A DNA stretch of 64,000 bases from Dendrobates tinctorius (Eukaryota), in the NCBI RefSeq assembly GCF_039654945.1, contig NW_027361738.1:81840001-81904000 (forward strand), given 5' to 3'. Position numbers and translations under genes: made by a program. Below are positions 27,401-49,976 of this stretch, piece after piece. Position 1 is the first letter of the stretch, and every line of letters starts with the position of its first letter. Under the pieces are notes generated by a model that did no database searches, was not told where the DNA came from, and saw nothing but the letters and a program-made list of their open reading frames with translations.

Positions 27401-30400
27401 ACTCACTATTCTGCTGGTGCAGTCACTGTGTACATTCATTACATTACTGATCCTGAGTTACATCCTGTATTATACTCCAGAGCTGCACTCACTATTCTGC
27501 TGGTGCAGTCACTGTGTACATACATTACATTACTGATCCTGAGTTACATCCTGTATTATACCCCAGAGCTGCACTCACTATTCTGCTGGTGCAGTCACTG
27601 TGTACATACATTACATTACTGATCCTGAGTTACATCCTGTATTATACTCCAGAGCTGCACTCACTATTCTGCTGGTGCAGTCACTGTGTACATACATTAC
27701 ATTACTGATCCTGAGTTACATCCTGTATTATACCCCAGAGCTGCACTCACTATTCTGCTGGTGCAGTCACTGTGTACATACATTACATTACTGATCCTGA
27801 GTTACATCCTGTATTATACTCCAGAGCTGCACTCACTATTCTGCTGGTGCAGTCACTGTGTACATACATTACATTACTGATCCTGAGTTACCTCCTGTAT
27901 TATACTCCAGAGCTGCACTCACTATTCTGCTGGTGCAGTCACTGTGTACATACATTACATTACTGATCCTGAGTTACATCCTGTATTATACTCCAGAGCT
28001 GCACTCACTATTCTGCTGGTGCAGTCACTGTGTACATACATTACTGATCCTGAGTTACACCATGTATTATACTGCAGAGCTGCACTCACTATTCTGCTGG
28101 TGCAGTCACTGTGTACATACATTACTGATCCTGAGTTACATCCTGTATTATACTCCAGAGCTGCACTCACTATTCTGCTGGTGCAGTCACTGTGTACATA
28201 CATTACTGATCCTGAGTTACATCCTGTATTATACTCCAGAGCTGCACTCACTATTCTGCTGGTGCAGTCACTGTGTACATTCATTACATTACTGATCCTG
28301 AGTTACATCCTGTATTATACTCCAGAGCTGCACTCACTATTCTGCTGGTGCAGTCACTGTGTACATACATTACTGATCCTGAGTTACATCCTGTATTATA
28401 CTCCAGAGCTGCACTCACTATTCTGCTGGTGCAGTCACTGTGTACATACATTACTGATCCTGAGTTACATCCTGTATTATACTGCAGAGCTGCACTCACT
28501 ATTCTGCTGGTGCAGTCACTGTGTACATTCATTACATTACTGATCCTGAGTTACATCCTGTATTATACTCCAGAGCTGCACTCACTATTCTGCTGGTGCA
28601 GTCACTGTGTACATTCATTACATTACTGATCCTGAGTTACATCCTGTATTATACTCCAGAGCTGCACTCACTATTCTGCTGGTGCAGTCACTGTGTACAT
28701 ACCGTACATTACATTACTGATCCTCAGCTACATCCTGTGTTATACTCCAGAGCTGCACTCACTATTCTGCTGGTGCAGTCACTGTGTACATTCATTACAT
28801 TACTGATCCTGAGTTACATCCTGTATTATACTCCAGAGCTGCACTCACTATTCTGCTGGTGCAGTCACTGTGTACATTCATTACATTACTGATCCTGAGT
28901 TACATCCTGTATTATACTCCAGAGCTGCACTCACTATTCTGCTGGTGCAGTCACTGTGTACATACATTACATTACTGATCCTGAGTTACATCCTGTATTA
29001 TACCCCAGAGCTGCACTCACTATTCTGCTGGTGCAGTCACTGTGTACATACATTACATTACTGATCCTGAGTTACATCCTGTATTATACTCCAGAGCTGC
29101 ACTCACTATTCTGCTGGTGCAGTCACTGTGTACATACATTACATTACTGATCCTGAGTTACATCCTGTATTATACCCCAGAGCTGCACTCACTATTCTGC
29201 TGGTGCAGTCACTGTGTACATACATTACATTACTGATCCTGAGTTACATCCTGTATTATACTCCAGAGCTGCACTCACTATTCTGCTGGTGCAGTCACTG
29301 TGTACATACATTACATTACTGATCCTGAGTTACCTCCTGTATTATACTCCAGAGCTGCACTCACTATTCTGCTGGTGCAGTCACTGTGTACATACATTAC
29401 ATTACTGATCCTGAGTTACATCCTGTATTATACTCCAGAGCTGCACTCACTATTCTGCTGGTGCAGTCACTGTGTACATACATTACTGATCCTGAGTTAC
29501 ACCATGTATTATACTGCAGAGCTGCACTCACTATTCTGCTGGTGCAGTCACTGTGTACATACATTACTGATCCTGAGTTACATCCTGTATTATACTCCAG
29601 AGCTGCACTCACTATTCTGCTGGTGCAGTCACTGTGTACATACATTACTGATCCTGAGTTACATCCTGTATTATACTCCAGAGCTGCACTCACTATTCTG
29701 CTGGTGCAGTCACTGTGTACATTCATTACATTACTGATCCTGAGTTACATCCTGTATTATACTCCAGAGCTGCACTCACTATTCTGCTGGTGCAGTCACT
29801 GTGTACATACATTACTGATCCTGAGTTACATCCTGTATTATACTCCAGAGCTGCACTCACTATTCTGCTGGTGCAGTCACTGTGTACATACATTACTGAT
29901 CCTGAGTTACATCCTGTATTATACTGCAGAGCTGCACTCACTATTCTGCTGGTGCAGTCACTGTGTACATTCATTACATTACTGATCCTGAGTTACATCC
30001 TGTATTATACTGCAGAGCTGCACTCACTATTCTGCTGGTGCAGTCACTGTGTACATACATTACTGATCCTGAGTTACATCCTGTATTATACCCCAGAGCT
30101 GCACTCACTATTCTGCTGGTGCATTCACTGTGTACATACATTACATTACTGATCCTGAGTTACATCCTGTATTATACTCCAGAGCTGCACTCACTATTCT
30201 GCTGGTGCAGTCACTGTGTACATACATTACATTACTGATCCTGAGTTACCTCCTGTATTATACCCCAGAGCTGCACTCACTATTCTGCTGGTGCAGTCAC
30301 TGTGTACATACATTACTGATCCTGAGTTACATCCTGTATTATACCCCAGAGCTGCACTCACTATTCTGCTGGTGCAGTCACTGTGTACATACATTACATT

Positions 30401-31707
30401 ACAGATCCTGAGTTACCTCCTGTATTATACCCCAGAGCTGCACTCACTATTCTGCTGGTGCAGTCACTGTGTACATACATTACATTACTGATGCTGAGTT
30501 ACACCCTGTATTATACTCCAGATCTCCACTCACTATTCTGCTGGTGCAGTCACTGTGTACATACATTACATTACTGAACCTGAGTTACATCCTGTATTAT
30601 ACTCCAGAGCTGCACTCACTATTCTGCTGGTGCAGTCACTGTGTACATACATTACATTACTGATCCTGAGTTACCTCCTGTATTATACCCCAGAGCTGCA
30701 CTCACTATTCTGCTGGTGCAGTCACTGTGTACATACATTACATTACTGATGCTGAGTTACACCCTGTATTATACTCCAGATCTGCACTCACTATTCTGCT
30801 GGTGCAGTCACTGTGTACATACATTACTGATCCTGAGTTACCTCCTGTATTATACCCCAGAGCTGCACTCACTATTCTGCTGGTGCAGTCACTGTGTACA
30901 TTACATTACTGATCCTGAGTTACATCCTGTATTATACCCCAGAGCTGCACTCACTATTCTGCTGGTGCAGTCACTGTGTACATACATTACATTACTGATG
31001 CTGAGTTACACCCTGTATTATACTCCAGATCTGCACTCACTATTCTGCTGGTGCAGTCACTGTGTACATACATTACTGATCCTGAGTTACCTCCTGTATT
31101 ATACCCCAGAGCTGCACTCACTATTCTGCTGGTGCAGTCACTGTGTACATTACATTACTGATCCTGAGTTACATCCTGTATTATACTCCAGAGCTGCACT
31201 CACTATTCTGCTGGTGCAGTCACTGTGTACATACATTACATTACTGATCCTGAGTTACATCCTGTATTGTACTCCAGAGCTGCACTCACTATTCTGCTGG
31301 TGCAGTCACTGTGTACATTACATTACTGATCCTGAGTTACATCCTGTATTGTACTCCAGAGCTGCACTCACTATTCTGCTGGTGCAGTCACTGTGTATAT
31401 AATTACATTACTGATCCTGAGTTACATCCTGTATTATACTCCAGAGCTGCACTCACTATTATTACTGTCTCTGTATCACCATTTCCATGTATTGTAGGAC
31501 TACAAGTACCAGGTCCTCGCTGTCCTCTGTGCAGGTGTTTCTAATCCCTCAGTAAACTGCAGTGTCACATTTAGCGTTGTAATAAATGACTCCACGCACT
31601 TTGACTGCTCTCGGATTCCGTCCATCTCGGTACTTTGCCCGGGAGGCGCAGATCTTTCGCTGCTCGTGGTGCGGATGGACTTCTATCTGCAAACGGGGAT
31701 CCGTCAT
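15391..31707 (-). CDS. RBM48: RNA-binding protein 48, ~336 aa. Coding exons 31600-31707, 24874-25064, 22478-22623, 20152-20627, 15391-15480
   Basis: HHEQRKICASRAKYRDGRNPRAVK|VYTINLESRYLLVQGVPAIGVMKELIEQFALFG...LQSAR|VAKRKLDENSFFGGILHVCYAPEFESV...RFMPRTTQLQERQRRRE...KQRRRI* matches RBM48. GT-AG introns in phase. Head-to-head with PEX1 as in other vertebrates. Confidence 0.93.
16651..19739. mobile_element. Non-autonomous piggyBac-type (Tx1D-like architecture) DNA element, 3.1 kb, with internal ~390-bp tandem repeats and TTAGGG-rich repeats
   Basis: TTAA|CCCCTTCACGACC ... GGTCATGAAGGGG|TTAA. The marker GGTCTAGTTTCCAAAATGG recurs at about 17660, 18045, 18442 and 18825. No transposase ORF. Confidence 0.8.
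20152..20627 (-). CDS. RBM48: RBM48 coding exon 4 (5' boundary approximate)
   Basis: RFMPRTTQLQERQRRRE...IVMGPKLP...DDSLNASAKLITDKLKE; donor gtgtgt; acceptor chosen by reading phase. Confidence 0.82.
20720..22450. repeat. 35-36-bp AT-rich minisatellite (TATGTACAAGAATATAACTACTATAATACTGCCCC) filling RBM48 intron 3, with an inverted internal block at about 21278-21745
   Basis: Tandem repeat; orientation flips at about 21277 and back at about 21746. Confidence 0.95.
22478..22623 (-). CDS. RBM48: RBM48 coding exon 3
   Basis: VAKRKLDENSFFGGILHVCYAPEFESVQETREKLQDRRRYV; tttag acceptor, gtcagt donor. Confidence 0.93.
23657..23964. mobile_element. hAT-type MITE related to 1693-1964
   Basis: TAGAGATGGGAGAACGTGCT ... 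AGCACGTTCGTTCATCACTG degenerate TIRs. Confidence 0.55.
24020..24450 (-). mobile_element. Degenerate Penelope-like retroelement RT fragment
   Basis: Minus-strand ADVSLLWKG...LNTNNIGLKF...IFCKPTATNSFL resembles PLE RT motifs (DDxxxIWxG, LNxxxxxLKFT, YRKPT). Confidence 0.5.
24874..25064 (-). CDS. RBM48: RBM48 coding exon 2 (RRM)
   Basis: ORF 24870-25064; ctag acceptor, gtgaga donor. Confidence 0.94.
25160..31460 (+). repeat. 81/86-bp satellite array (about 74 units) filling RBM48 intron 1, with a 1442-bp higher-order duplication
   Basis: Tandem repeat. The variant unit CATACCGTACATTAC...CTCAGCTA occurs at about 27260 and 28702. Confidence 0.97.
31600..31707 (-). CDS. RBM48: RBM48 coding exon 1
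   Basis: MTDPRLQIEVHPHHEQRKICASRAKYRDGRNPRAVK, donor gtgcgt. Confidence 0.88.
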
Positions 31708-32262: not shown

Positions 32263-32376
32263 ATGCTGGGAGGGGGGATATCGGGGGCTGCGGCTGTCAC
32301 CGTGACCCTCACCGGCGCCAAGGATGCGTTCCTGCGCCTGACACCCGAGCTCAGCGCACAGCTGCGCCTGGAACAG
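32263..32376 (+). CDS. PEX1: PEX1 exon 1
   Basis: [38 protein letters not shown], gtgaga donor. Confidence 0.88.
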
Positions 32377-35300
32377 GTGAGAGCGTCCCCTGCCGACCCC
32401 CTGCAGGCTGTGCACTCAGTGACTGGGGGCCCCTCCTCTCCAGCTTATATACAGGGGGCCACAATGTCTCCTCACTGTGCAGGCAGGAGCGTCTGGTCGT
32501 CCCTGTTGTAGAACTACATCTCCCAGCGTGCTGCTGCTAGGGCATGCTGGGAGTTGTGGTTCTGCAGCAGCTGGAGTCATATCTACGTGAGATCTGGATT
32601 TGTAGAAGGCAGGGAGCATGGAGCCCTTTGGCACGGCTCAGAGATTGCTCTGCACGCTCCCTTTGACCTCCATCATCTTTTTGTGTGTGTGTTCCCCTTT
32701 AAATATTTTATTCTGTGAGACAAAACCGTCTTTTTTTTTTTTCCTGCAGAATCTAATCGCTTTTCGTAACGTCCCCGCGAGTACGTGAGATCCGCGGCGT
32801 CACCGTCCTCCTGTCATAAAACCTTTGCTCCAAGAGAAGCCGAGAAAAGAGCCACGTTAATGAGTAATGGTGGCGCGAGGCGTCCAGGCTGGGGGAGGGG
32901 AGGCTGCTGCAGCGGCGGCTCGTGCGGAGCTTACGTGATTTAGCTCCTGAAAACCGAGGTGCGGTGAATGGGCGCCAGCTTTGTCTGTGTGGTCATATTA
33001 GTGCACTCGTTTTTTAATTGAAGGACTGGTTCTGTACCGAAAGATCCCGTTAAAGGGATTTTCTCATTTCTGCAAGTGATTATATATTACTCGGATACGA
33101 TCGACCTTCGGGATCTTTAGGCCGCGTGCACACATTGCGGTTTTTTTTTTTTTTCAGTGCAGATTTGTCACAAAACTTGAAGGGAGCGAGAATCCTGCCG
33201 TCTCCTGCACACGTGGCTGATTTGTGACTGGTAGATTATATCTGCAGCGTGTCAGTTCTCAGGCTATGTTCACACGTGGTGGGGTTTTTTTTTTTGCTGC
33301 GTTCTTTATGCAAATTGAAAGCTGCGTTTTACAGAACCGGCCGAAGCGACGAGAGATCACAAATCTCATGCGCGCACTTTTTTTTTTTTTTCCTGACCGA
33401 ATTGGAAAACTGCTGAGTTTTTATAAATTGCAGCACTTTTTTTTTTTTTTTCAGCGTTTTCTTTCATCCATAGAAAGCAATGAGTGCAAAAAAAAAAACG
33501 CAGCAACAAATTAAGAACGCCGGTATCAGGTTCTGCTTTTTTTGGTGCAGAAAACTCAAGCTCAACAAGCACTAAAGTGTATCAGCGTGCACAAGAGACA
33601 AATGTGCCAGAAAACCGCAGCCAAACCTGCATTGTGTAAGCAGATTCTTTACTGCCGAGACAGCAGGATTCCCTGCAAAGAAAAATGCAATGTGTGAACA
33701 GAACCTTACAGGGGTTCTGCTGCAGATTTCCCCCAGACCAATAAGTGGGGGAAATATGTAAGAAAAACGCAAGTAAAAAAAGAAGCAAATTAAACTTTTG
33801 CTTTTATCTGCCAAGAGATGCACCAAATACACAATGCGAGCACATGTGAAGAGGTTTATTTATAGACAGTAACAAAAACTCATGAGAGAAACAATTACTC
33901 AATTATTTCCACTTGCAAGTCTGAAAAACGTGTGAACATACCCTAAACAACTATGCACGTGCAGGGACCACCGTGGTGAGTCCACAAGGGCAGCCCCATA
34001 GACGTTCCTGATGTGCCGTTCAATTCATCGTGTCTCCAGGGCCAGTCAATGAGTTTCTGGTTTGGATGAAGAAGGCGCTCATAGGGGAGAGCAGGGAATC
34101 TGTCGGTAGGATCACCCCTCATAAGCAGTCTATGTTGATACGCTATTTGTTTTAACCAAAAAAAAAAAGTCAGTACATGGTGAAGCACAGACCGCTGATT
34201 GCACGCTATCATGTTTCCTCCAGGGCGGCGCTCTAGAGGTGACATGGGAGGAGCAGCGGGTCTATCTCGGTTGGATGGCGAACCGCAGCAGAGTTACAGA
34301 CTACACCATGGTGGAGCTCAACAGACAGCTGGCCGAAAAACTGGGACTTGTGGATGGACAGCAGGTACTGAGCATGATCTCCAGCTCCGGGGACATGTGA
34401 CTTCTCGGCTGTTGAGAAACTACAGCTCTCAGCATGCCCGGACAGTCACACGTATGTATTGTCATAGAGTTTGAGCCATACATATCCAGGATATTTTGTG
34501 CTCAGTCTTTTGAGATTATGTACCTGTAGCCATTCTTTATATTTGGTGGCAGAATTGGCCTATTCCCGAGAGGGAATCCTCCCCAAGGTGCCGGACACTG
34601 AAAAATCATGTTTTATTCGGCATTTTTCCATGTAATTTGTATAAAATAACTAATTTACTACTGAAACAGAAAAATCCAGGTTTGAAACCATATGCAGATT
34701 GGCATGAAAATGCATTCGGGGTGTGTCAGTGCACAGAGTAGTGACACCCTCCCAATGCATTGGCAGACTGATTTGCATGTGGCTTCAAGGCTTGATTTCT
34801 CAGCGCTGACACATTGGATTACTACAAGACACGTGTCACCTATACGGACAAACTGCTAGTTTTATTATAAAAATCTTCCCTGCAAGATTCACTTCTCGCA
34901 CCTGTAACAAGTTTGCCCCCAACTTTTTTTTTTTCCTTATAAGACTATTGATATTTTATTCCAGAAAATAAGTACCGTATATACCAGTGTATAAGCAGAC
35001 CCCCCCCCTAATTTTGCCACAAAAAAATGGGAACTTATTGAAGCCTAGGATCAATGGTGGTCCAAGAAGATGCTCTATAGAAACGCCCCCCCCCCATATG
35101 CTGGCCCAAGAAGATGCTCCATAAATACCCCCCATATATTGCTGCACAAGGGTTAATGCTGCCCCATAAATACCCCTTATTTGCTGCTGCAATTAAAAAA
35201 AAAAAAAATGACACTCACACCTCCATCGCTGGGGGCCAGGTGCCGTTGCCTTGAGCTCCTGGCACCGGTGATATTTTTTTCTCCTACTGGCAGACACGTA

Positions 35301-38300
35301 ATGTACAAGGGCTGGTATTCTTTCATGGAAACATATCTAAATATTCAAAACTTCACATATTGCCTGTTTTACACTCTGACATGTGGTCCCAAGTTTGGTG
35401 CTTTTTCTATAGCTCCACCAGCCCTCTTCTGTTTCGGGGGTCTCTCTGTATCAATCAAGATGCTGGCTTAGCTCCTTTCTACTCTAGTCAGGTCCTAAGC
35501 TACAAGTCTGTGGTCACTGACTGCAGATTACTTCTCACAGCGCGCATACTATGAGGATTCACCTATGTTGGCCATCATGCATACTTTCGGCCACATTCCG
35601 ACTAGACGTACACAGCCTCACTCAATGTATTGGGCAAGGCCAGAAACAGTCTACTCTGATTGTGGCCGGGCGTATATCACATGATCGCCCGCTCCCGACA
35701 TTGGAGAATCCTCACAGCGTGCAGTGCATGTGTGCTACGAGGATTCACACGTCTGCAGTCACAGAGTAACTACAGACTTGTACTTCAAGGCCGGACAACC
35801 CTTTCAAGAAAGCTATCACTGAGTCACTGGTGAAAAGCGATTTAGCCTCCCCTCCAACCTATCATCATTCTGCACTTAAGAATGAAATCCATTTGTATCT
35901 TGTAGAAATGAAATACATTTATTTATGTGAACAATATAGGAGATAAATCCCCAAAACATTGGTAGAGTATTGCAAAGCAAGAAGTCCATCAACACGAATG
36001 ACATTAGCTCTTCAGAATTAAATCTAAGTCAGCAGAATAGTGCACGTAGGACACATGCCGATATATAGAATATATACAGTAATACAGTGCTCAGTGATGG
36101 CAGTGCCAGGAAAGAAGGTATAGATCTCACCCAATTCTTGTAGTGGACCAAGTCACATGCTGATGCAAGAGTATATGACCAGAGGGGTGAACCGGTAGCC
36201 TTATGTGCCCAGTGTAACTCCCGCCCTGACAAGGGCAGTACCTAAGTATAACCTATGAAGACTAGCCCACGAATACGTTTCCACCTCAAAAGCAAATCCT
36301 CATCAGGGGAGTACCAAAAGAGGAAAAAGGATCCATTAGATTCACAGCTAAAGGGTATAAGTCAGGGCGCTGCAGTGACAGCAAGCTCTAAAAGAAGCAT
36401 GCAGGGCGCCACACGGCCTCTTGGAAGTATATGCTCCTGCTGAGGCTGAAACGTGTCGGGTGGACTACTCTTTTGGGGCATGTTACATGTTCAAACTTGA
36501 GTCCTGTCCTTGTCTGGGCAGGAGATATACAGGGGATATTAGGTTACCAATTCACCCTTCTGGCCATATACTCTTGCATCGGCATGTAACTCGGGTCCTC
36601 TACAAGAATTGGGCGAGAGCTATACCTTCTTTCCTGGCAGCACTGTACTATTGTAGTGTGGCACAGAGCTCTTTTACTCATTAAAAGTTACAGTAAGTTC
36701 TAACCATTTATCCTACTTCTGCTGATGTAATCATATCAGATTTCAGTGTTAAAGTAAAACATATAAAGCGCACAAACAATGTAGAACAAAGGTAACAAGG
36801 GAAAAAAAAAAAAACCAGGGGAGAAGGGAATCAGTGGCTGATGACACAAGGATTCAATTGTGAACAAGAATCAAAACAGATAATGGAGAAATTCTACCTA
36901 TAAAACATCTGGATATCAGACCATGGCCGCATGGTGGGACCGGCTGAGCAATGGACTCCGATGTCGCTGGCAGTCCTATGGAGAGGTACACATGCCCGAG
37001 CCTTATCTGGGTTGTTGGGGGGGGGGGGGGATCCCCGCAGTTGTACTCTTTAAGACAATACTTGGACATTAGGTGCCATTACCAGCAGTACAAATAACAT
37101 ACAACTGTACGGTGATAGCTGATTACTCTCTCAAGCAGGCGACCCAAAAAGAAGGCATGAAAATGACTATTTGGCACATACGGGACTATTGTACCCAGGC
37201 CAGGGAGTCAGCTCTGCTGCAGAAGGTTCAACTCAATGGACCCAAAACACAACCTCATACCTCTGTCAGCAGGAGGACACACCACCAATAAGAATAATAC
37301 AGATATGGTGTAAAAGTTATAGGGGTATTCCTATCTACAAGATCCTATCCCAGTATGTAGTAGGTGTAATAGTAATTTTAGCAAATACCTCCAATAAGAA
37401 ACGTAGTACAGTTTTTCTGATTCACTGCATCTTTCTTCATGTGCAGGCATTACAGGATCTTGGGTATCCATGGTTATGACCACTATCAGTGGTCGTAACC
37501 ATGGATACCCAAGGTCCTGTAATGCCCCTTGCATGAGGAAAGAGTGAATCAGAAAAACTATAAGTTTCTTATTGGAGGTATTTGCGAATATTATTACTAC
37601 ACCTACTACATACTAGGATAGGATCTTGTAGATGGGAATACCCCTTTAAACTACTGATCTAGACCTGTGAAGAGTAGTTATAACCGGCCATTTATTAATC
37701 TCTTCATTCTGGACAAAGATTGGGCTCCGTGAATGATCTGTCCATCTACAAGTAGGACCGCCCACCGGACTCCTAAACCAAATTGAGTAGAGAAAAAAAA
37801 CAAAACTGCAAGTTACAAGAAATTACTTGTCACTGCTATCAATGTTTAATGGGTTGTTCCCATTTTTAGAAGTTAGCACCAAACTTGCTGATGGGCCTGG
37901 TGTCCTAATGCTGGGACACCTACCTATTTGAATGTAGCGGTGGCCGGACATGTGCCGCCCTGCTATGTTCAGTCTCTGTGGAGCTCCCAGAGTACAGTGC
38001 TCAGCCTCCGGTGACAGTCCCATAGAGAATGACACAGTGGTGCACACATCCGGCCACCACGACATTCAGAAACCATTCTGTGGAGTCCAGTTTTTGGGAT
38101 TAGTGCGGGTCCCAGCAGTCAGACCACCAGACAGGTGATAATCTCTAAAGATTGGAATACCCCTTACTAACACAGGATATAATCAGCAATCCGATAGACC
38201 CTGATCAGTGGTGGCTTATACCCCTGCAAAACAGCACTATTCTAGTGACTTGGCTTCATACACGTCAGTCTTACTAATCCAGATTTAATCGCATATATCC

Positions 38301-41300
38301 AGATGGGCAGAGCTGCATGTGGTCAACATTGCTTCTCCACGTATGCCAGCAGGTCATGTCCAGTTACCATGGGATGTTATGTCCTCTGCAGCTTTTGATC
38401 TCAGAGTCAGACGTAAGAGACAGGAGAGCTTAGGTGAAGCACCAACAATTATGGCAGAGTCCAGAAAAGATAAGAGCTGTAATATCGTAATCTTAGCTGC
38501 CAACCAGTTATCGCCCCCTCTCATAACCCGGGAAGAGGTGGCCGAGGACGCTCTGCAGGGGTTTGTTCACCCGCATGTCATAGTTCTTGCCCAGGTCATG
38601 TCGGCAGGCCGGACAGCTGTACACTGAGGCCTTGAAGGAGCGGTCCAGGCAGCTCTTGCAGATGTTGTGCAGACACTCGGTGGTGATGGGCTTGTACACC
38701 ACCTCCTGGCAGCAGATGCACAGGAAGGTCTCCTCCACCTTGCTGATGAATTTGGGCCCTTCCTTTAGATGAGTCATCACTTCGCTCCATAACTTAACGT
38801 TCAGCTCGTCCTTTTCGATCAGCTCTTTTTGCTCCGGAGTCAAGTCGTACACAAGCTCAGTTTTAGTTTTCTTCTGCGTTCCCTCCTCGTCGTCATCATC
38901 ATCATCATCATCAATGACAGATTTCCTTTTTCTCTTCCCTTTGACCGGACTTTCTAGTTCATCTGAATCTAGGTTCTCCTTCTCCCTCTCCTTGTTGGCC
39001 ACAGACTCTAGATAACCCTCGGGGTACTGCATAGTGAGGCCAAGTTTTTTACCACGTTCTTTGCCCTCTTTGGTCCATGGCGCCGGCTCGTCGTCATCTC
39101 TCCTCAGAAGGTAGCGCCATATGAGGAAGCCGGACTTGCCCTTCTCAGGCCAGTATTTCACTACTTTGTAGATGCCGTCGTATCGGTTGCCCTCTTCTGG
39201 GGCGAATTTGCTGTGCTTGCTCCCTTTGGCATTACGCACAACACGTACGGGTTTGCCCGCTTTCCAGTCTTTAGCTTCGGCCCCTTCTTTATTATTGATG
39301 GGGGTGTTACAGTTCATGGCTAGTGCTCGATTCATGTTGGTCAGTTTCTGGTCACATGACTGCTCCGCCGTCCGCTTGTTACCGGAGAGATCACGACCTC
39401 CGCTCCCGGTGTAGGTAAACTCTGTGCCATCATCAGCATCATCTTCATAACCACCAGCCAGGACCAGAGAAAAGGAGCCGTCATTGCTTCTCCCATGGAT
39501 GCCCGCCACATGAGGCCGATGCACGCCAGCCTCACTAACCTGCACCCTGAACTTCCACATGGTGCCAACTGGTACACCGGGTATCTTGCCGTAGTGATTG
39601 GATGGGACAATGGTGCACTCTCTGGAGCGCCCGACGCACGCCATGCCTTTCCCCCAGTCTCTTTGAGAAGATGAGCTGGCGGACGCCATCTTGGCTTTCT
39701 TCTTGCTCTCCTTTAGCTTTTCCCCCGCCAGCACCACCTCGCTGGTATCGTTCCTGCAGTCCGGGCAGTACCAGTCATCCACATCTGGCAGGGCGGACAG
39801 CGGCGGGTCCAGGCAGTAGATATGGAAGGCCATGTCACACTCATCGCACAGCAGCTGCTTCTCGGGGTCCTGTTTGCCCCCACAGATGTGGCAGGCGCAC
39901 ATGCGGCACTTGGTTTTGGGGTCATCCTTGCACAGCTTGCATTGGGGTCCAGTCTGCGGTTTGGCCGGCACTTCCTCGGGAGTCGGGGGCAGGGTCTCTG
40001 CTGGGATTGGGGTCTCGGGCCTCTCGATCTTAAACACCTCATCCACAAATACGATTTTGCAGTCATTTATGGGGTCTCCAGCGTCCCCCATTAGCAGCTT
40101 GGCGTACAGTTCCTTGCTGTTCTTGCCCTCTTTCTTGCGGAGGATCTCGGCGTCGTACCAGTAGCCCCGCTCCATGGGCTCCTCCGGGTTGTAGTTGAGC
40201 ATGACCACCAGTCCGGCCCGCAGCTCCTCCCAGGACAGCGTGCTCCGGGCCCGGGGGCGCACGTCTTGGCCCCTCAGCTGCACCACCCCATTCTCAGGAT
40301 AGCCCTCGTACTGGATATGGTAGATGACGTCATCAGCGGGGTCTCCGGGGCTTCCCCGGGTCACGTTCACCACCTCCGCCTCGAACCAGGCGCCCATGTG
40401 CAGGTCCCGGGCGTCCACCGGCTGCTTTATCCGGTACAGGCCGCGGGCGCTGGGCTCCTCCTCCGGCTCAGTCTCAGACATCGGGGAGTCGTCATCGGGC
40501 TCTTCCGCCGTTGCCGGCACCGGGGGAGGAGGAGGCGGCGGCGGGAGCTGGCGGAGCAGCAGCTGCACGATGTCATTCAGGCCGACGCTGTAATCAAAGA
40601 GCGTGTGTCCGTCCTCCATCTGCTTCCCCCGGTAGAAGAGCCGCTGCCGGTCCTGCTCCGCTCCGAACACCTCCTGGATCCGCTCCCGCAGCTCCTCCAC
40701 CTTGGTCAGTTTAGACAGGGAGTCAATGCGGTGAGTCTCCCGGCCGTCCATGGTGCGCACCTGGATCCACATGATGGCGGCTACTTGTCACTCACTACGG
40801 AACTGAGACTTCCGAACTCCCGCTCTCCGCCGGCGGCGCGGTTTATAATCTGGCGGGATCCTGACACGCCCGCTGATGATTGGTTAGCGCTGATTGGTAG
40901 GGAGGAGTTTCCTAAACGTAGCTCCTCCCCCCTATTCGCCGACACTGCTTTCCCGCCCGTTGTTCCTGTTGTCATGGAAACGTCGTTACCCCATACATTA
41001 GTGATATTGTCCTCCCCTCACTATAATATATACACGTCCTCCCCTCACTATAATATATACACGTCCTCCCCTCACTATAATATATACACGTCCTCCCCTC
41101 ACTATAATATATACACGTCCTCCCCTCACTATAATATATATATATATATACGTCCTCCCCTCACTATAATATATATATATACGTCCTCCCCTCACTATAA
41201 TATATATATATATACGTCCTCCCCTCACTATAATATATATATATATACGTCCTCCCCTCACTATAATATATATATATATACGTCCTCCCCTCACTATAAT

Positions 41301-42044
41301 ATATACACGTCCTCCCCTCACTATAATATATACACGTCCTCCCCTCACTATAATATATACACGTCCTCCCCTCACTATAATATATACACGTCCTCCCCTC
41401 ACTATAATATATATACGTCCTCCCCTCACTATAATATATATACGTCCTCCCCTCACTATAATATATATATATATATATACGTCCTCCCCTCACTATAATA
41501 TATATATATACGTCCTCCCCTCACTATAATATATATATATACGTCCTCCTCACTATAATATATATACGTCCTCCTCCTCACTATAATATATATACGTCCT
41601 CCCCTCACTATAATATATATACGTCCTCCTCACTATAATATATATATATATATATACGTCCTCCCCTCACTATAATATATATACGTCCTCCCCTCACTAT
41701 AATATATACACGTCCTCCCCTCACTATAATATATATACGTCCTCCCCTCACTATAATATATATACGTCCTCCCCTCACTATAATATATATATATATATAC
41801 GTCCTCCCCTCACTATAATATATATATATACGTCCTCCCCTCACTATAATATATATATATACGTCCTCCCCTCACTATAATATATATATATATATATACG
41901 TCCTCCCCTCACTATAATATATATACGTCCTCCTCCTCACTATAATATATATATACGTCCTCCTCCTCACTATAATATATATACGTCCTCCTCACTATAA
42001 TATATATACGTCCTCCCCTCACTATAATATATATACGTCCTCCT

Positions 42045-42087
<43 letters not shown>

Positions 42088-45000
42088 GTCCTCCCCTCAC
42101 TATAATATATATATATATACGTCCTCCCCTCACTATAATATATATACGTCCTCCCCTCACCATAATATATATACATCCTCCCCTCACTATAATATATATA
42201 CGTCCTCCCCTCACTATAATATACACTCACTGGCCACTTTATTAGGTACACCTGTCCAACTGTGTGTTAAGACTTAATTTCTAATCAGCCAATCACATGG
42301 CGGCAACTCAGTGCATTTAGGCATGTAGACATGGTCAAGACAATCTCCTGCAGTTCAAACTGAGCATCAGTATGGGGAAGAAAGGTGATTTGAGTGCCTT
42401 TGAACGTGGCATGATTGTTGGTGCCAGAAGGGCTGGTCTGAGAATTTCAGAAACTGCTGATCTACTGGGATTTTCACGCACAACCATCTCTAGGGTTTAC
42501 AGAGAATGGTCCGAAAAAGAAAAAAAATCCAGTGAGCGGCAGTTCTGTGGCCGGAAATGCCATGTTGATGCCAGAGGTCAGAGGAGAATGGGCAAACTGG
42601 TTCGAGCTGATAGAAAGGCAACAGTGACTCAAATTGCCACCCGTTACAACCAAGGTAGGCAGAAGAGCATCTCTGAACGCACAGTGCGTCGAACTTTGAG
42701 GCAGATGGGCTACAGCAGCAGAAGACCACACTGGGTACCACTCCTCTCAGCTAAGAACAGGAAACTGAGGCTACAATTTGCACAAGCTCATCGAAATTGG
42801 ACAGTAGAAGATTGGAAAAACGTTGCCTGGTCTGATGAGTCTCGATTTCTGCTGCGACATTCGGATGGTAGGGTCAGAATTTGGCGTAAACAACATGAAA
42901 GCATGGATCCATCCTGCCTTGTATCAACAGTTCAGGCTGGTGGTGGTGGTGTCATGGTGTGGGGAATTTTTTCTTGGCACTCTTTGGGCCCCTTGGTACC
43001 AATTGAGCATCGTTGCAACGCCACAGCCTACCTGAGTATTGTTGCTGACCATGTCCATCCCTTTATGACCACAATGTACCCAACATCTGATGGCTACTTT
43101 CAGCAGGATAATGCGCCATGTCATAAAGCTCGAATCATCTCAGATTGGTTTCTTGACCATGACAATGAGTTCACTGTACTCAAATGGCCTCCTCAGTCAC
43201 CAGATCTCAATCCAATAGAGCATCTTTGGGATGTGGTGGAACGGGAGATTCGCATCAGGGATGTGCAGCCGACAAATCTGCGCCAACTGTGTGATGCCAT
43301 CATGTCAATATGGTCCAAAATCTCTGAGGAATGCTTCCAGCACCTTGTTGAATCTCTGCCACGAAGAATTGAGGCAGTTCTGAAGGCAAAAGGGGGTCCA
43401 ACCCGTTACTAGCATGGTGTACCTAATAAAGTGGCCAGTGAGTGTATATACGTCCTCCCCTCACCATAATATATATACGTCCTCCCCTCACTATAATATA
43501 TATATATACGTCCTCCCCTCACTATAATATATATACGTCCTCCCCTCACCATAATATATATACGTCCTCCCCTCACCATAATATATATACGTCCTCCCCT
43601 CACCATAATATATATACGTCCTCCCCTCACTATAATATATATATATATGTCCTCCCCTCACTATAATATATATACGTCCTCCCCTCACCATAATATATAT
43701 ACGTCCTCCCCTCACCATAATATATATACGTCCTCCCCTCACCATAATATATATACGTCCTCCCCTCACTATAATATATATATATATGTCCTCCCCTCAC
43801 TATAATATATATACGTCCTCCCCTCACTATAATATATATACGTCCTCCCCTCACTATAATATATATACGTCCTCCCCTCACCATAATATATATATGTCCT
43901 CCCCTCACTATAATATATATACGTCCTCCCCTCACCATAATATATATACGTCCTCCCCTCACCATAATATATATACGTCCTCCCCTCACCATAATATATA
44001 TACGTCCTTCCCTCACTATAATATATATACGTCCTCCCCTCACTATAATATATATATACGTCCTCCCCTCACCATAATATATATACGTCCTCCCCTCACC
44101 ATAATATATATACGTCCTCCCCTCACCATAATATATATACGTCCTCCCCTCACTATAATATATATACGTCCTCCCCTCACTATAATATATATACGTCCTC
44201 CCCTCACTATAATATATATACGTCCTCCCCTCACTATAATATATATATACGTCCTCCCCTCACCATAATATATATACGTCCTCCCCTCACTATAATATAT
44301 ATACGTCCTCCCCTCACCATAATATATATACGTCCTCCCCTCACCATAATATATATACGTCCTTCCCTCACTATAATATATATACGTCCTCCCCTCACTA
44401 TAATATATATACGTCCTCCCCTCACCATAATATATATGTCCTCCCCTCACTATAATATATATACGTCCTCCCCTCACTATAATATATATATACGTCCTCC
44501 CCTCACTATAATATATATATACGTCCTCCCCTCACCATAATATATATACGTCCTCCCCTCACTATAATATATATATACGTCCTCCCCTCACTATAATATA
44601 TATATACGTCCTCCCCTCACCATAATATATATACGTCCTCCCCTCACTATAATATATATACGTCCTCCCCTCACCATAATATATATACGTCCTTCCCTCA
44701 CTATAATATATACGTCCTCCCCTCACTATAATATATATACGTCCTCCCCTCACCATAATATATACGTCCTCCCCTCACCATAATATATATATACGTCCTC
44801 CCCTCACTATAATATATATATGTCCTCCCCTCACTATAATATATGTACGTCCTCCCCTCACTATAATATATATACGTCCTCCCCTCACTATAATATATAT
44901 ATATACGTCCTCCCCTCACCATAATATATATATACGTCCTCCCCTCACCATAATATATATACGTCCTCCCCTCACCATAATATATATACGTCCTCCCCTC

Positions 45001-48000
45001 ACCATAATATATATACGTCCTCCCCTCACCATAATATATATACGTCCTCCCCTCACTATAATATATATACGTCCTCCCCTCACTATAATATATATACGTC
45101 CTCCCCTCACCATAATATATATACGTCCTCCCCTCACCATAATATATATACGTCCTCCCCTCACTATAATATATATACGTCCTCCCCTCACTATAATATA
45201 TATACGTCCTCCCCTCACTATAATATATATACGTCCTCCCCTCACTATAATATATATACGTCCTCCCCTCACTATAATATATATATATACGTCCTCCCCT
45301 CACCATAATATATATACGTCCTCCCCTCACTATAATATATATATATAGGTCCTCCCCTCACCATAATATATATACGTCCTTCCCTCACTATAATATATAT
45401 ACGTCCTTCCCTCACTATAATATATATACGTCCTCCCCTCACTATAATATATATACGTCCTCCCCTCACTATAATATATATACATCCTCCCCTCACTATA
45501 ATATATATACGTCCTCCCCTCACCATAATATATATACGTCCTCCCCTCACCATAATATATATACGTCCTCCCCTCACTATAATATATATACGTCCTCCCC
45601 TCACTATAATATATATACGTCCTCCCCTCACTATAATATATATACGTCCTCCCCTCACTATAATATATATACGTCCTCCCCTCACTATAATATATATATA
45701 CGTCCTCCCCTCACCATAATATATATACGTCCTCCCCTCACTATAATATATATACGTCCTCCCCTCACCATAATATATATACGTCCTCCTCCTCACTATA
45801 ATATATATACGTCCTCCCCTCACCATAATATATACGTCCTCACCATAATATATATATACGTCCTCCCCTCACTATAATATATATATACGTCCTCCCCTCA
45901 CCATAATATATATACGTCCTCCCCTCACTATAATATATATATACGTCCTCCCCTCACTATAATATATATATATACGTCCTCCCCTCACCATAATATATAT
46001 ACGTCCTCCCCTCACTATAATATATATACGTCCTCCCCTCACCATAATATATATACGTCCTCCCCTCACCATAATATATATACGTCCTCCCCTCACCATA
46101 ATATATATACGTCCTCCCCTCACTATAATATATATACGTCCTCCCCTCACCATAATATATATATACGTCCTCCCCTCACCATAATATATATATACGTCCT
46201 CCCCTCACCATAATATATATACGTCCTCCCCTCACCATAATATATATACGTCCTCCCCTCACCATAATATATATACGTCCTCCCCTCACTATAATATATA
46301 TACGTCCTCCCCTCACTATAATATATATACGTCCTCCCCTCACTATAATATATATACGTCCTCCCCTCACTATAATATATATACGTCCTCCCCTCACCAT
46401 AATATATATACGTCCTCCCCTCACTATAATATATATACGTCCTCCCCTCACTATAATATATATACGTCTTCCCCTCACTATAATATATATACGTCCTCCC
46501 CTCACTATAATATATATACGTCCTCCCCTCACTATAATATATATACGTCCTCCCCTCACTATAATATATATATACGTCCTCCCCTCACCATAATATATAT
46601 ACGTCCTCCCCTCACTATAATATATATACGTCCTCCCCTCACCATAATATATATACGTCCTTCCCTCACTATAATATATATACGTCCTCCCCTCACCATA
46701 ATATATACGTCCTCCCCTCACCATAATATATATATATACGTCCTCCCCTCACTATAATATATATATACGTCCTCCCCTCACCATAATATATATACGTCCT
46801 CCCCACACTATAATATATATATACGTCCTCCCCTCACCATAATATATATATGTCCTCCCCTCACTATAATATATATACGTCCTCCCCTCACTATAATATA
46901 TATACGTCCTCCCCTCACCATAATATATATACGTCCTTCCCTCACTATAATATATATACGTCCTCCCCTCACCATAATATATACGTCCTCCCCTCACCAT
47001 AATATATATATATACGTCCTCCCCTCACTATAATATATATATACGTCCTCCCCTCACCATAATATATATACGTCCTCCCCACACTATAATATATATATAC
47101 GTCCTCCCCTCACCATAATATATATATACGTCCTCCCCTCACCATAATATATATACGTCCTCCCCTCACTATAATATATATACGTCCTCCCCTCACCATA
47201 ATATATATACGTCCTTCCCTCACTATAATATATATACGTCCTCCCCTCACCATAATATATACGTCCTCCCCTCACCATAATATATATATATACGTCCTCC
47301 CCTCACTATAATATATATATACGTCCTCCCCTCACCATAATATATATACGTCCTCCCCACACTATAATATATATATACGTCCTCCCCTCACCATAATATA
47401 TATATACGTCCTCCCCTCACCATAATATATATACGTCCTCCCCTCACTATAATATATATACGTCCTCCCCTCACTATAATATATATACGTCCTCCCCTCA
47501 CCATAATATATATACGTCCTCCCCTCACCATAATATATATACGTCCTCCCCTCACCATAATATATATACGTCCTCCCCTCACTATAATATATATACGTCC
47601 TCCCCTCACTATAATATATATACGTCCTCCCCTCACTATAATATATATACGTCCTCCCCTCACCATAATATATATACGTCCTCCCCTCACTATAATATAT
47701 ATACGTCCTCCCCTCACTATAATATATATACGTCTTCCCCTCACTATAATATATATACGTCCTCCCCTCACTATAATATATATACGTCCTCCCCTCACTA
47801 TAATATATATACGTCCTCCCCTCACTATAATATATATACGTCCTCCCCTCACTATAATATATGTACGTCCTCCCCTCACTATAGTGTATATATACGTCCT
47901 CCCCTCACTATAGTGTATATATACGTCCTCCCCTCACTATAGTGTATATATACGTCCTCCCCTCACTATAGTGTATATATACGTCCTCCCCTCACTATAG

Positions 48001-49976
48001 TGTATATATACGTCCTCCCCTCACTATAATATATATACGTCCTCCCCTCACTATAATATATGTACGTCCTCCCCTCACTATAATATATGTACGTCCTCCC
48101 CTCACTATAGTGTATATATACGTCCTCCCCTCACGCTACACGTCTTCCTACATCACCACTGGTCTTAGTAAAGCAATGCCGAGGTTATACGGTGTCATTA
48201 TCATATAATGTGACGCCATTGCTACATCCCATAATATTGTGACACAAAATGCGTCATCTGTGCGGAAAAAATAGTGTAATTTCTACAATATCTGTCATTG
48301 TCCAGCACCAGTCACACGGAGGGGTTGTTATTTTTGTTTTTTTAAGTCATTTTGATCCAAAATTATCAAAAAAAAAAAAAAGCGCCATAAATGCATTCTT
48401 ATCTAATCCTGCTAAAAATCCAATGAAATGTCAGGGGGTTTTAAGCATTTTTTCTATGAAGAGGCTTTGGAAAAACTGGTGTTCAGTCCAGTCAAAAGGC
48501 TGCTAAAAATAAATAAAACTTCCCCAAAAATGAAATTTCCTGAGGTGGTTTCTACTTGGAAAAACGTGTCGTTTTTGAACACCTCAAAAACTTGTGTGTG
48601 AACAGGGCCTGATAGGGATTTAGGCCGGTTTCACACATCTGACTTTCACGGTGTGCGTGCACAGCGCTGCGAGGATCGGCCCTGGCTCTCCGGATAGACA
48701 TATATGGCCTGCGGTCAGTCTGGGCTTTGTGGCCCGTATATGGTCTGTGAAATACGCCAGTCTGAACCCAGGCCTAAAAAAAGCAGTCACACATACACTG
48801 GCTAAAGCTGGTGTGCATGTGTGTGTGTATGTGTGTATATATATATAATTTGTATAAAAAATGTAAATAAAATCTAATAAATAATCCAAGCAAATGAATT
48901 TCAATGTGCGGAACTATCGAAAGCCGTAAAAAATAATAATAATATTTATGCCACGCGGTGAAAGCTGAAGTGAAAAATAGAAATGGCAGAATTTCTGGTT
49001 TTCAGTCACCTTGCCTTAAAAAAAAAAAAAAAAAGAAATAGAAGGAATCAGAAAATCATCTGAACCCCAAAATTTGAATGAATTAAGAAGTACAGCTGTA
49101 GTGCAAGAAAAAAAAACCCCAAAAAACAAACTCTGATACGACTCTGTCGACCAAGAAATAAAAAAAAGTAATGTCTCTCGTAGCCCTCTGGAGCTCTATT
49201 GCCCAAGGACCTCATAATCCTGCAGCCGCCACAAGGGAGGAGACCAGATCTGCTGTTAGGGGAAGACTCATGGTTCGGAAGACTAGTGTCTTAGGCCGGG
49301 TTCACAAGTGATGGCCGAGGTGCAGACAGGATGCCTTGTTGGTGCAACACTCTTGGACCCCGTGGGGACCGTAATTCCTATTAATTGCAATAGAGACAGA
49401 CCATAAATTATAGGAGTCTTAGCTGCCGATCCCTCTCCAATCTGCGATGAATGTAATATCTTCTCTGTTAATTTTTCTTTTCAGGTGTTCCTTAAGCCGT
49501 GTAGGTCTGTCCCATCTTGTAAGGAAGTCACAGTGGAGCCTCTGTCTGCTGATGACTGGGAGATACTGGTAATTAGCTTCTTTCATTTTTACATCACCTA
49601 CCACAAGGGGGAGCTCACCGAATACATATTTATAAAGGTTCCGTGGTTGCGTCTGACTTGTACAGCCAGCACCTGGCAGCTTCAAGTCCCATAAGGAAAA
49701 TATATATATGTCCAAAAAGATGAAAGCAGCACACCAAGATGGAATCGATTCAAATGCAATCTAATTGACCATTCGGCGACGTTCCGGTCCCAAAGGAATG
49801 TGGACCTTTTTCCACATTCCTTTGGGACCGGAACGTCGCCGGATGGGCAGTTAAATTGCATTTGAATCGATTCCAACTTGGTGTGCTGCTTTCATCTTTT
49901 TGGACATATTTATTGAGGTTTGATACATACCTAGAATGTGTTTTGCACCCATTGATTATCCTTTGTGCTGCTTTTT

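Follow-up and report, generated by a model that had tools for sequence, protein, structure and literature searches.

DNMT1 has UHRF1 as its obligatory partner, and many of the biochemical findings on UHRF1 come from Xenopus egg extract. The Xenopus lineage still has the multi-exon gene. Canonical vertebrate UHRF1 proteins (human 9lpk_A, Xenopus tropicalis and Spea bombifrons) have the same five-domain order as the frog protein described here and can be aligned with it over the full length. A second protein of UHRF domain architecture in one genome is known in UHRF2. The closest described cases of gene replacement are orphan retrogenes, which are intronless, stand at a new locus, are selected and expressed, and have a multi-exon parent that survives in outgroups but is undetected in the lineage itself (Ciomborowska et al. 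2013, PMC3548309; Carelli et al. 2016, PMC4772013).

The gene under study, which we call paralogue A, is intronless and under purifying selection like an orphan retrogene, and probably resembles one in its new locus, its expression and the absence of its parent. It differs in that the gene it would have replaced is central to the inheritance of DNA methylation, that the absence of the parent is seen at the level of annotated proteins, and that the retrocopy has been duplicated into an inverted pair (A and B) that evolves as a conversion mosaic. Like UHRF2, the pair gives one genome a second protein of UHRF architecture, but in the tree A and B both group within UHRF1, with the pelobatoid sequences as their sister; they would be a frog-specific RNA-mediated duplication and not the UHRF1/UHRF2 split. 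In comparison with canonical UHRF1, paralogue A is intronless where the canonical gene has at least 16 coding exons, occupies a probably new locus inside PEX1, and differs in regulatory linkers, with the DSG/S108 motif absent, a proline at the equivalent of R296 and an acidic run after the polybasic region. We give a probability of roughly 0.8 to the reading that this locus is paralogue A of an ancient, functional intronless UHRF1 pair that replaced its multi-exon parent.

The analysed window is a stretch of 64,000 nucleotides from Dendrobates tinctorius. Paralogue A is a single intron-free open reading frame on the minus strand (38508-40772) that runs from an ATG through 754 amino acids to the stop codon, with zero internal stops or frameshifts in the ORF listing. 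The encoded protein was a 100% match to a protein on record in the database protein search. Pfam showed ubiquitin (aa 3-75), TTD (aa 111-252), PHD (aa 294-339), SAD_SRA (aa 393-561) and RING (aa 685-723) domains with E-values from 1e-57 to 5e-5. A phmmer search against the PDB aligned aa 1-754 over the full length with human UHRF1 (9lpk_A, 1152 bits), and UHRF2 domains in the PDB also matched. These results confirmed a full UHRF1 protein, its domains following one another in the order UBL, tandem Tudor, PHD, SRA and RING, in agreement with the sequence-only reading, which had claimed an intact intronless five-domain frame of 2265 nt with a Kozak start. The ATG sits in the context gccgccatcATGt, which has A at position -3. 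The Rfam scan of the window gave no match.

Paralogue A shows 71-72% identity to archaeobatrachian UHRF1 and retains every residue that is invariant across an alignment of 47 vertebrate UHRF1 proteins, including the reader and catalytic residues. All domains are encoded on the minus strand. The UBL domain (40548-40766) keeps the invariant F46. In the tandem Tudor domain (40017-40442) the aromatic cage is intact, with human F152, Y188 and Y191 corresponding to the invariant F130, Y155 and Y158, and D142/D145 are also kept. The PHD finger (39756-39893) keeps its zinc ligands and both H3R2-binding aspartates (human D334 = D310, invariant; human D337 = D313, nearly invariant). The 5mC pocket of the SRA domain (39090-39596) is intact, human G448, Y466, D469, Y478 and S481 being G424, Y442, D445, Y454 and S457 in the frog protein, and so is the NKR finger (human N489-K490-R491 = N465-K466-R467); both are invariant in the 47 sequences. 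The RING finger (38604-38720) keeps all of its zinc ligands (C685, C688, C700, H702, C705, C708, C720 and C723), which are likewise invariant. The conserved residues suggest that the protein would read hemimethylated CpG via SRA and the H3 tail via TTD-PHD, and that UBL and RING would ubiquitylate H3 and PAF15, leading to DNMT1 recruitment. A TPKK motif in the frog protein was considered as the equivalent of a known human CDK site and dropped; the alignment places it opposite human T665-S666.

Two exons of the host gene were placed on the plus strand of the window. The coding part of PEX1 exon 1 (32263-32376) is followed by the donor GTGAGA, and exon 2 (34224-34364) is flanked by AG and GT. 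Both align to PEX-2N exons annotated in Engystomops, and exon 2 matches residues 44-89 of the PEX1 N-terminal domain 1wlf_A (E = 6.6e-4). Paralogue A lies antisense to PEX1, 4.1 kb past exon 2. PEX1 exon 3 was located neither in the window nor in a 10-kb stretch of the Engystomops locus. An earlier placement of A between PEX1 exons 2 and 3 on the opposite strand was borne out for the strand and for exon 2. Nesting in a PEX1 intron is drawn from the orthologous loci, where annotated PEX1 spans the opposite-strand UHRF1-like gene.

In hyloid, ranoid and myobatrachid frogs alike, orthologues of A were found at this place in PEX1. In Ranitomeya a 2265-bp intronless gene lies antisense inside PEX1, in Engystomops the intronless gene lies beside the 5' exons 1-2 of PEX1, in Pyxicephalus it is intronless and lies antisense inside PEX1 at 7.6 kb from the PEX1 5' end with RBM48 head-to-head, and in Pseudophryne it is intronless too and lies antisense within PEX1. 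The earlier reading had no mention of a sister copy, B, or of the A/B conversion mosaic. In Engystomops, Nanorana and Pyxicephalus, copy B is intronless and follows PEX1 in the same orientation, at a distance of 2-5 kb downstream of its 3' end. D. tinctorius likewise has an intronless B, on the same contig as A. The Mixophyes B copy had no PEX1 exon within 10 kb.

Paralogue A is under purifying selection. The comparison of D. tinctorius A with Engystomops A gave dN of 0.075, dS of 0.73 and omega of 0.10, far from the value near 1 that would have spoken for neutral drift. Among A orthologues omega was 0.07 in the divergent middle of the gene and at most 0.36 in every region. The earlier statement that folded domains are conserved while linkers have drifted was also borne out. 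About 150 bp of promoter upstream of A is conserved with Engystomops.

Paralogue A is probably transcribed into an unspliced mRNA, as seen in contigs from four runs whose type was guessed as RNA and whose contigs are unstranded. The contigs were collinear with 36800-40785 and showed no splice joints within the CDS. They ran unbroken past the stop codon to 37615, into unique genomic 3' flank, with more contigs at similar depth over 36800-37353, and we assign a probable long 3' UTR to 36800-38507 on the minus strand. Candidate poly(A) signals on the same strand, downstream of the CDS, are at 38289, 37850, 37696 and 35923. Contig depth in the four runs fell to zero at 40889-41000, the contigs ending near the TATA box; the roughly 200 bases upstream of the transcription start are the sole silent control for transcription, in runs recorded as 'RNA?' with strandless contigs.

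These data bear on the explanation that the gene is a neutral processed pseudogene still open by chance, or an artefact of assembly or cDNA contamination. Such an origin would fit an intronless gene with GC above that of its surroundings. However, independent assemblies place the same gene at this position in species that have been apart since the hyloid/ranoid/myobatrachid radiation, omega is about 0.1, the upstream promoter is conserved, and the transcript contigs continue into unique flank. The explanation as a whole is effectively refuted and can be set aside with near certainty.

The multi-exon parent is present in outgroups. In Spea the UHRF1 gene is spread over 18.6 kb and has at least 16 coding exons; in Ascaphus it extends over 13.2 kb. 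None of the coding introns of the parent (at least 15) is present in paralogue A. No PEX1 exons were found over 3-10 kb of the flanks of the Spea and Ascaphus parent genes, while the positive controls showed them; we take UHRF1 and PEX1 to be unlinked in other tetrapods. An old retrocopy under purifying selection had been proposed from the sequence, and the complete absence of parental introns, the common PEX1 position across frogs and the omega of 0.10 all agree with it. Downstream of A, no A-rich 20-mer was found within 4 kb, in line with the lack of an obvious poly(A) relic that had been noted before, and homology of A to its orthologue and paralogues stops at the stop codon. Missing hallmarks of retroposition are expected given an age of more than 100 My. 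A shift in GC3 was considered as a retrogene signature and dropped; GC3 is 0.58-0.73 in the retrocopies and 0.43 in Spea, but it reaches 0.62 in the Ascaphus parent.

The predicted short 5' UTR and proximal promoter of A occupy 40773-40922 on the minus strand; conservation with Engystomops A reaches as far as 40922. The promoter contains CCAAT boxes at 40893-40897 and 40879-40883, an E2F-like site at 40852-40859 and TATAAA at 40842-40847, all on the minus strand. This core block is common to A and B copies. A CpG-island-like stretch covers the promoter and the 5' CDS (40200-41000), with GC of 0.56-0.69 and CpG o/e of 0.74-1.14 against 0.2-0.5 in the flanks. The combination of the CCAAT/E2F-like/TATA block and the CpG island supports a putative promoter at A. 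The Spea upstream region shares only two short motifs with the A/B promoter, AAACCGCGC and GGAGCGCG, and blastn-short of the retrocopy promoter against the parental upstream regions gave no match.

The promoter is relevant to a different origin of the intronless state, in which introns were lost without classical retroposition, either through a cDNA-converted DNA duplicate beside PEX1 or through loss in place at an ancestral PEX1-adjacent uhrf1. A CCAAT/E2F-like promoter at both A and B is what a cell-cycle gene like the parent would be expected to have, and the two motifs shared with Spea and the missing poly(A) relic fit as well. On the other side, no fewer than 15 coding introns have gone together, PEX1 exons were absent from the 3-10 kb of flank covered around the Spea and Ascaphus genes, and the upstream regions of these two parents align neither with each other nor with the retrocopy promoter. 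We consider this origin quite improbable, and retroposition is the probable mechanism of the intronless copies.

No parent-type UHRF1 protein was found in any neobatrachian in two protein database searches of annotated proteomes. The roughly 20 annotated neobatrachian species had only A- or B-type proteins, whereas every archaeobatrachian had a parent-type protein. In the tree, all neobatrachian copies formed one clade (100/100) with Pelobatoidea as its sister, and no neobatrachian lineage branched off deeper. From these annotated proteins we infer that the multi-exon parent was lost in neobatrachians. The competing explanation is that A and B are extra, specialised retrogenes and that a canonical multi-exon uhrf1 persists in these frogs, unannotated or in assembly gaps. 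The absence search covered annotated proteins, large repeat-rich frog genomes are hard to annotate, and paralogue A has the derived regulatory linkers expected of a specialised copy. However, the distribution of A- and B-type against parent-type proteins is complete in the annotated species, the neobatrachian clade is placed where orthologues belong, and B copies are conservative and keep ancestral linkers. We judge a persisting parent unlikely. The sequence-only reading had left a choice between an additional, specialised factor and a gene that replaced the parent; the evidence favours both together, since the annotated proteomes gave no parent-type neobatrachian protein, there are two retro-paralogues, and A is derived.

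A and B are conversion mosaics. Between Engystomops A and B, dS by region rose from 0.02 at the ends of the gene to 1.23 in its middle, and the sliding-window profile was concordant. In D. tinctorius the UBL domain is 100% identical between A and B, consistent with gene conversion, and the RING finger shows 96% identity. The tree of linker 2, PHD and linker 4 separated an A clade (100/99) from a B clade (95/87), with hyloids and ranoids in each, whereas the tree of UBL, linker 1 and RING paired A with B by species with support of 96/91 to 100/99. UBL, linker 1 and RING are homogenised within species, while linker 2/PHD and the SRA-RING linker stay paralogue-specific.

The regulatory linkers of UHRF1 were compared between A, B and outgroups. 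R295/R296 and the polybasic region have a role in UHRF1, and linker-2 residues R295-R296-K297 couple TTD and PHD (PMC4615792). Linker 2 of A (aa 253-290; 39903-40016, minus strand) is one of the two islands of A/B divergence, and human R295-R296-K297 corresponds to K-P-Q in the D. tinctorius protein and to K-R-Q in B copies and outgroups. All hyloid A copies are without the linker-2 arginine. The second island (38862-38942, minus strand) holds the polybasic KGKRKRKS (aa 611-618), followed by an A-specific acidic run (aa 621-630) and GTQKKTK. In linker 1, the S108/DSG motif is subject to CK1-betaTrCP control (PMC8216287). The corresponding motif SDTDSGCGSG..SDKNS is conserved from lungfish to archaeobatrachian frogs and is missing from linker 1 of A (aa 76-110; 40443-40547, minus strand), which is poly-Pro/acidic. 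All 15 outgroup proteins have the DSG/S108 motif and none of the 27 neobatrachian A and B proteins does, a shared loss that the earlier reading had not noted. At the 85% threshold there were no clade-fixed substitutions for A; under a relaxed criterion there were 10 such sites in A and 2 in B, mainly within TTD and linker 2. These differences suggest that A is the derived copy of the pair and that B keeps the ancestral mode, and A may have become a regulatory variant in which TTD-PHD coupling or auto-inhibition is changed. AlphaFold2 models of full-length A and B, built on the 47-sequence alignment, had mean pLDDT of 55 and 53 (PHD and SRA below 50), and these low values make them unusable for a comparison of linker-2 docking.

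In the history that we propose, a uhrf1 mRNA would have been reverse-transcribed on the stem of Neobatrachia, in the interval between the divergence from spadefoot-type frogs and the hyloid/ranoid/myobatrachid radiation. A single retrocopy would have inserted in or next to PEX1 and then been duplicated locally in inverted orientation, giving copy A antisense in PEX1 intron 2 and copy B on the PEX1 strand a few kb beyond the PEX1 3' end. The multi-exon parent would then have been lost, and the A/B pair would now supply UHRF1 function, with a compact CCAAT/E2F-like/TATA promoter inside a CpG island driving an unspliced mRNA. Non-crossover conversion between the inverted copies would keep UBL, linker 1, part of TTD and RING near-identical in each species, and would also cover SRA in some lineages. 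Selection would maintain two islands of difference, one in linker 2 and pre-PHD/PHD and the other in the SRA-RING linker, and A would have lost the arginine by which linker 2 docks in the TTD groove and gained the acidic run after its polybasic region. The biochemical activity of the pair and a functional split between A and B are predicted from these residues.

A broader proposal goes further and is tentative, and we think it more doubtful than probable. All modern frogs may maintain methylation with two intronless UHRF1 paralogues that flank PEX1 in inverted orientation, their catalytic ends kept identical by conversion and two linkers held apart by selection. Without the arginine switch and with the acidic patch, A might read chromatin in a mode constitutively unlike that of B (for example uncoupled from H3K9me3, or specific to germline or early embryo), so that the allosteric states of UHRF1 would be split into two genes. 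Both copies might escape CK1/beta-TrCP control through the loss of DSG/S108.

Full-text literature searches for a UHRF1 retrogene or intronless UHRF1, frogs and neobatrachian taxa found no paper that describes the gene, which many frog genome annotations already list as 'UHRF1-like'. For annotators, the neobatrachian 'UHRF1-like' gene appears to be the sole UHRF1-type gene annotated there. Modern frogs (Neobatrachia) are the great majority of anuran species. If most frogs rely on the retrogene pair, this would show plainly that an essential epigenetic regulator can give way to its own retrocopy. A and B would also serve as natural variants whose differences lie almost entirely in the linkers believed to govern the open and closed states of UHRF1, and models of linker-2/PBR allostery and of the S108 degron would be testable by A/B swaps in existing assays. 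The inverted, conversion-prone pair around PEX1 would in addition be a compact system in which to study islands of divergence against concerted evolution.

The open reading frame (ORF) of paralogue A occupied window positions 38508..40772 on the minus strand and ran from an ATG start for 754 uninterrupted codons. Pfam placed a ubiquitin-like domain (UBL) at aa 3-75, a tandem Tudor domain at aa 111-252, a PHD at aa 294-339, an SRA at aa 393-561 and a RING at aa 685-723, which is the UHRF1 order, and the protein aligned over its full length with human UHRF1 (9lpk_A, 1152 bits). These results bore out the intact intronless UHRF1 ORF described in the sequence-only reading. The coding part of PEX1 exon 1 (32263-32376, donor GTGAGA) and PEX1 exon 2 (34224-34364, AG/GT flanks) were located on the plus strand. 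Exon 2 matched 1wlf_A, the structure of the PEX1 N-terminal domain, and both exons aligned with annotated PEX-2N exons of Engystomops. With these exons placed upstream, the ORF lies 4.1 kb past exon 2 in antisense. The earlier placement of the ORF between exons 2 and 3 thus held for exon 2 and for orientation, but exon 3 was not found within the window.

Tandem repeats made up roughly one third of the window. An 86-bp satellite (~66 copies, 95% alike) lay directly upstream of PEX1 exon 1 at 25181-31460, and also at 11540-12055. The same family, 80-84% identical, occurred at the same position in Engystomops, with a fragment just upstream of its UHRF1 A copy (database loci L001:17478-19695, L001:9589-9750 and L002:7741-8029, L002 carrying the PEX1 exons). 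A satellite with its position conserved between two frog families is unusual, and this one had no Rfam match. A 27-bp minisatellite with strong C-over-G skew (41009-42223 and 43445-48134, ~210 copies in total) started ~90 bp upstream of the UHRF1 promoter block and was split by a Tc1/mariner-type element at 42372-43412 with an intact 346-aa transposase ORF (HTH_Tnp_Tc3_2 and DDE_3). The 61% GC of the block at 5866-10719 was due to a GC-rich 25-bp minisatellite (~194 copies, 81% matches), and this region held no ORF of at least 150 aa. A second GC-rich block (54000-59500) contained a reverse-transcriptase/RNase H ORF at 56212-57621 (RVT_1, RT_RNaseH), whose neighbouring ORFs had no Pfam matches, and is probably a decayed LTR retroelement. 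Further tandem arrays were found at 651-1312 (period 34 bp), 2313-3208 (31 bp), 17637-19121 (382 bp), 20720-22450 (35 bp) and 62465-62864 (24 bp).

The ~150 bp upstream of the paralogue A ATG was conserved with Engystomops A up to 40922. A core promoter block, common to the A and B copies of hyloids and one ranoid and situated within a CpG-island-like stretch, contained a CCAAT box, an E2F-type site, TATAAACCGCGC, AGCGCGGGAG and, at the start, GCCATCATG. In an alignment of the upstream regions of database loci L005 and L003 (A1), both of the B copies examined carried a perfect TTTCCCGCC at the E2F-type site (window 40852-40859), where the two A copies carried GATCCCGCC or CCTCCCGCC, a sequence difference that hints at different cell-cycle control of A and B.

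Four runs supplied the read contigs: two, of organism A, were guessed to be RNA, one was untyped and the fourth came from a related organism B. Contigs of all four runs were collinear with 36800-40785 and showed no joints within the paralogue A CDS, and one contig was continuous across the stop codon to 37615. Contig depth collapsed at 40748-40888 and was zero at 40889-41000, a short silent control. These contigs, which are unstranded and of guessed run type, fit an unspliced paralogue A mRNA with a start ~30 bp downstream of the TATA box and a long 3' UTR. One RNA contig (run X18) matched the RING-coding end of A and had a loose end at 38518, just before the stop codon, as would be seen if it came from a B-copy mRNA whose 3' UTR differs. 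Other contigs, with many differences at 39620-39836, likewise matched A only in converted segments and then diverged. Such contigs indicate that the D. tinctorius B copy is also expressed, at comparable depth.

The B copy of D. tinctorius was P0007, a 743-aa 'UHRF1-like' protein 86% identical to the window protein (GCA_039654945.1). Protein database searches returned two 'UHRF1-like' proteins, often on the same contig, in many neobatrachian frogs, and one 'UHRF1' of ~770 aa in each of the archaeobatrachians Xenopus, Bombina, Discoglossus, Pelobates, Spea, Leptobrachium, Rhinophrynus and Ascaphus. Every neobatrachian copy looked up, including D. tinctorius B and the Mixophyes copy, was intronless, the gene range on record being equal to the CDS length. 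The intronless copy A lay antisense inside PEX1 in Ranitomeya, Pseudophryne and Pyxicephalus (in the last, 7.6 kb separates it from the PEX1 5' end and RBM48 lies head-to-head) and adjoined PEX1 exons 1-2 in Engystomops. The intronless B copies of Engystomops, Nanorana and Pyxicephalus lay 1.8-5 kb past the 3' end of PEX1 and on the same strand as that gene, and in Pyxicephalus A and B were ~35 kb apart and mutually inverted. The Spea parent gene had at least 16 coding exons spread over 18.6 kb, and that of Ascaphus spanned 13.2 kb. The probe that detected PEX1 exons beside B copies found none in the 3-10 kb of flank covered at these two parents.

All coding introns are absent at once and the locus appears to be new, which suggests that a UHRF1 mRNA was retroposed. 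As the sequence-only reading had noted, no poly(A) relic remains. The promoter may have been carried over because the parental transcript was initiated upstream, or it may have been assembled where the copy inserted. Since two intronless copies with a common promoter block lie beside one host gene, a single insertion followed by local inverted duplication is the most economical history of the pair.

In the full-length tree the neobatrachian proteins formed a single clade (100/100) with a long stem, sister to Pelobatoidea, the position expected of orthologues of the parent. Relationships of A and B within this clade were blurred because identity between them differed by domain: in D. tinctorius it was 100% in the UBL, 97% in linker 1 and 96% in the RING, against 37% in linker 2, 83% in the PHD and 70% in the SRA-RING linker. 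Trees built from two sets of segments confirmed the mosaic. In the tree of linker 2, PHD and linker 4, the hyloid and ranoid A copies grouped with Pseudophryne (A clade, 100/99), and the hyloid and ranoid B copies grouped with Mixophyes (B clade, 95/87). In the tree of UBL, linker 1 and RING, the A and B copies of the same species came out as pairs (Engystomops 100/99, Dendropsophus 100/97, Pyxicephalus 100/99, Gastrophryne 96/91). Between Engystomops A and B, dS was lowest at the ends (0.02), higher in the SRA (0.20) and the TTD (0.43), and highest in the middle islands (1.23). In sliding windows, A versus B nucleotide identity was 97-100% over codons 1-146, went down to 54-59% near codons 227-286 and 603-657, and was again 97-100% over codons 678-754 in Engystomops. 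Together with the diverging RNA contig, these results show that the duplication is older than the hyloid/ranoid split, that conversion has been recurrent since, and that two islands resist it. A crossover between the inverted copies would invert most of PEX1, which may be why only conversion tracts are seen.

Paralogue A kept all residues invariant across 47 aligned vertebrate UHRF1 proteins, including UBL F46, the TTD cage, the PHD aspartates, the SRA 5mC pocket, the NKR finger and the RING ligands. The linker-1 motif SDTDSGCGSG...SDKNS was present in 15/15 outgroup proteins and absent from 27/27 neobatrachian A and B proteins; human linker 1 carries S108, a CK1/beta-TrCP degradation signal (PMC8216287). 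Human R295-R296-K297 reads K-R-Q in outgroups and B but K-P-Q in the window protein, and the linker 2 change was confined to paralogue A. The linker-2 arginines dock in a TTD groove, their mutation abolishes multivalent H3 binding, and the polybasic region competes for the same groove (PMC4615792). Paralogue A alone had an acidic run immediately after its polybasic region KGKRKRKS. Ten ancestral residues were lost in A (TTD 4, linker 2 5, PHD 1) and two in B. These sequence differences suggest that the ancestral regulatory mode persists in B and that A would be a regulatory variant; AlphaFold models of A and B were of poor quality. A TPKK motif was seen in B copies, outgroups and several non-dendrobatid A copies, and read TQKK in the three dendrobatid A proteins (window 38862-38882, aa 631-637). 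This change would remove a candidate proline-directed phosphosite, whose match to a known human site is uncertain.

Comparison of Dendrobates and Engystomops A orthologues gave dN 0.075, dS 0.73 and omega 0.10, in agreement with the purifying selection proposed earlier. Omega was 0.07 in the divergent middle of A and 0.06-0.10 for B orthologues, with a maximum of 0.36 over all regions compared. A full-text literature search turned up no description of a UHRF1 retrogene in frogs, and the sequence-only reading had likewise known of none. With the window protein and, after it, the Spea parent as query, the protein collection yielded parent-type matches solely from archaeobatrachians and other vertebrates; every neobatrachian match was of A or B type, with no parent-type protein among the annotated proteins. 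This supports replacement of the parent by the retrogene pair in neobatrachians at the level of annotated proteins. A retrogene that replaces its own parent is a known phenomenon, the 'orphan retrogene' (PMC3548309, PMC4772013), and the genes themselves are already annotated as 'UHRF1-like'; what is unusual is the conversion-mosaic pair.
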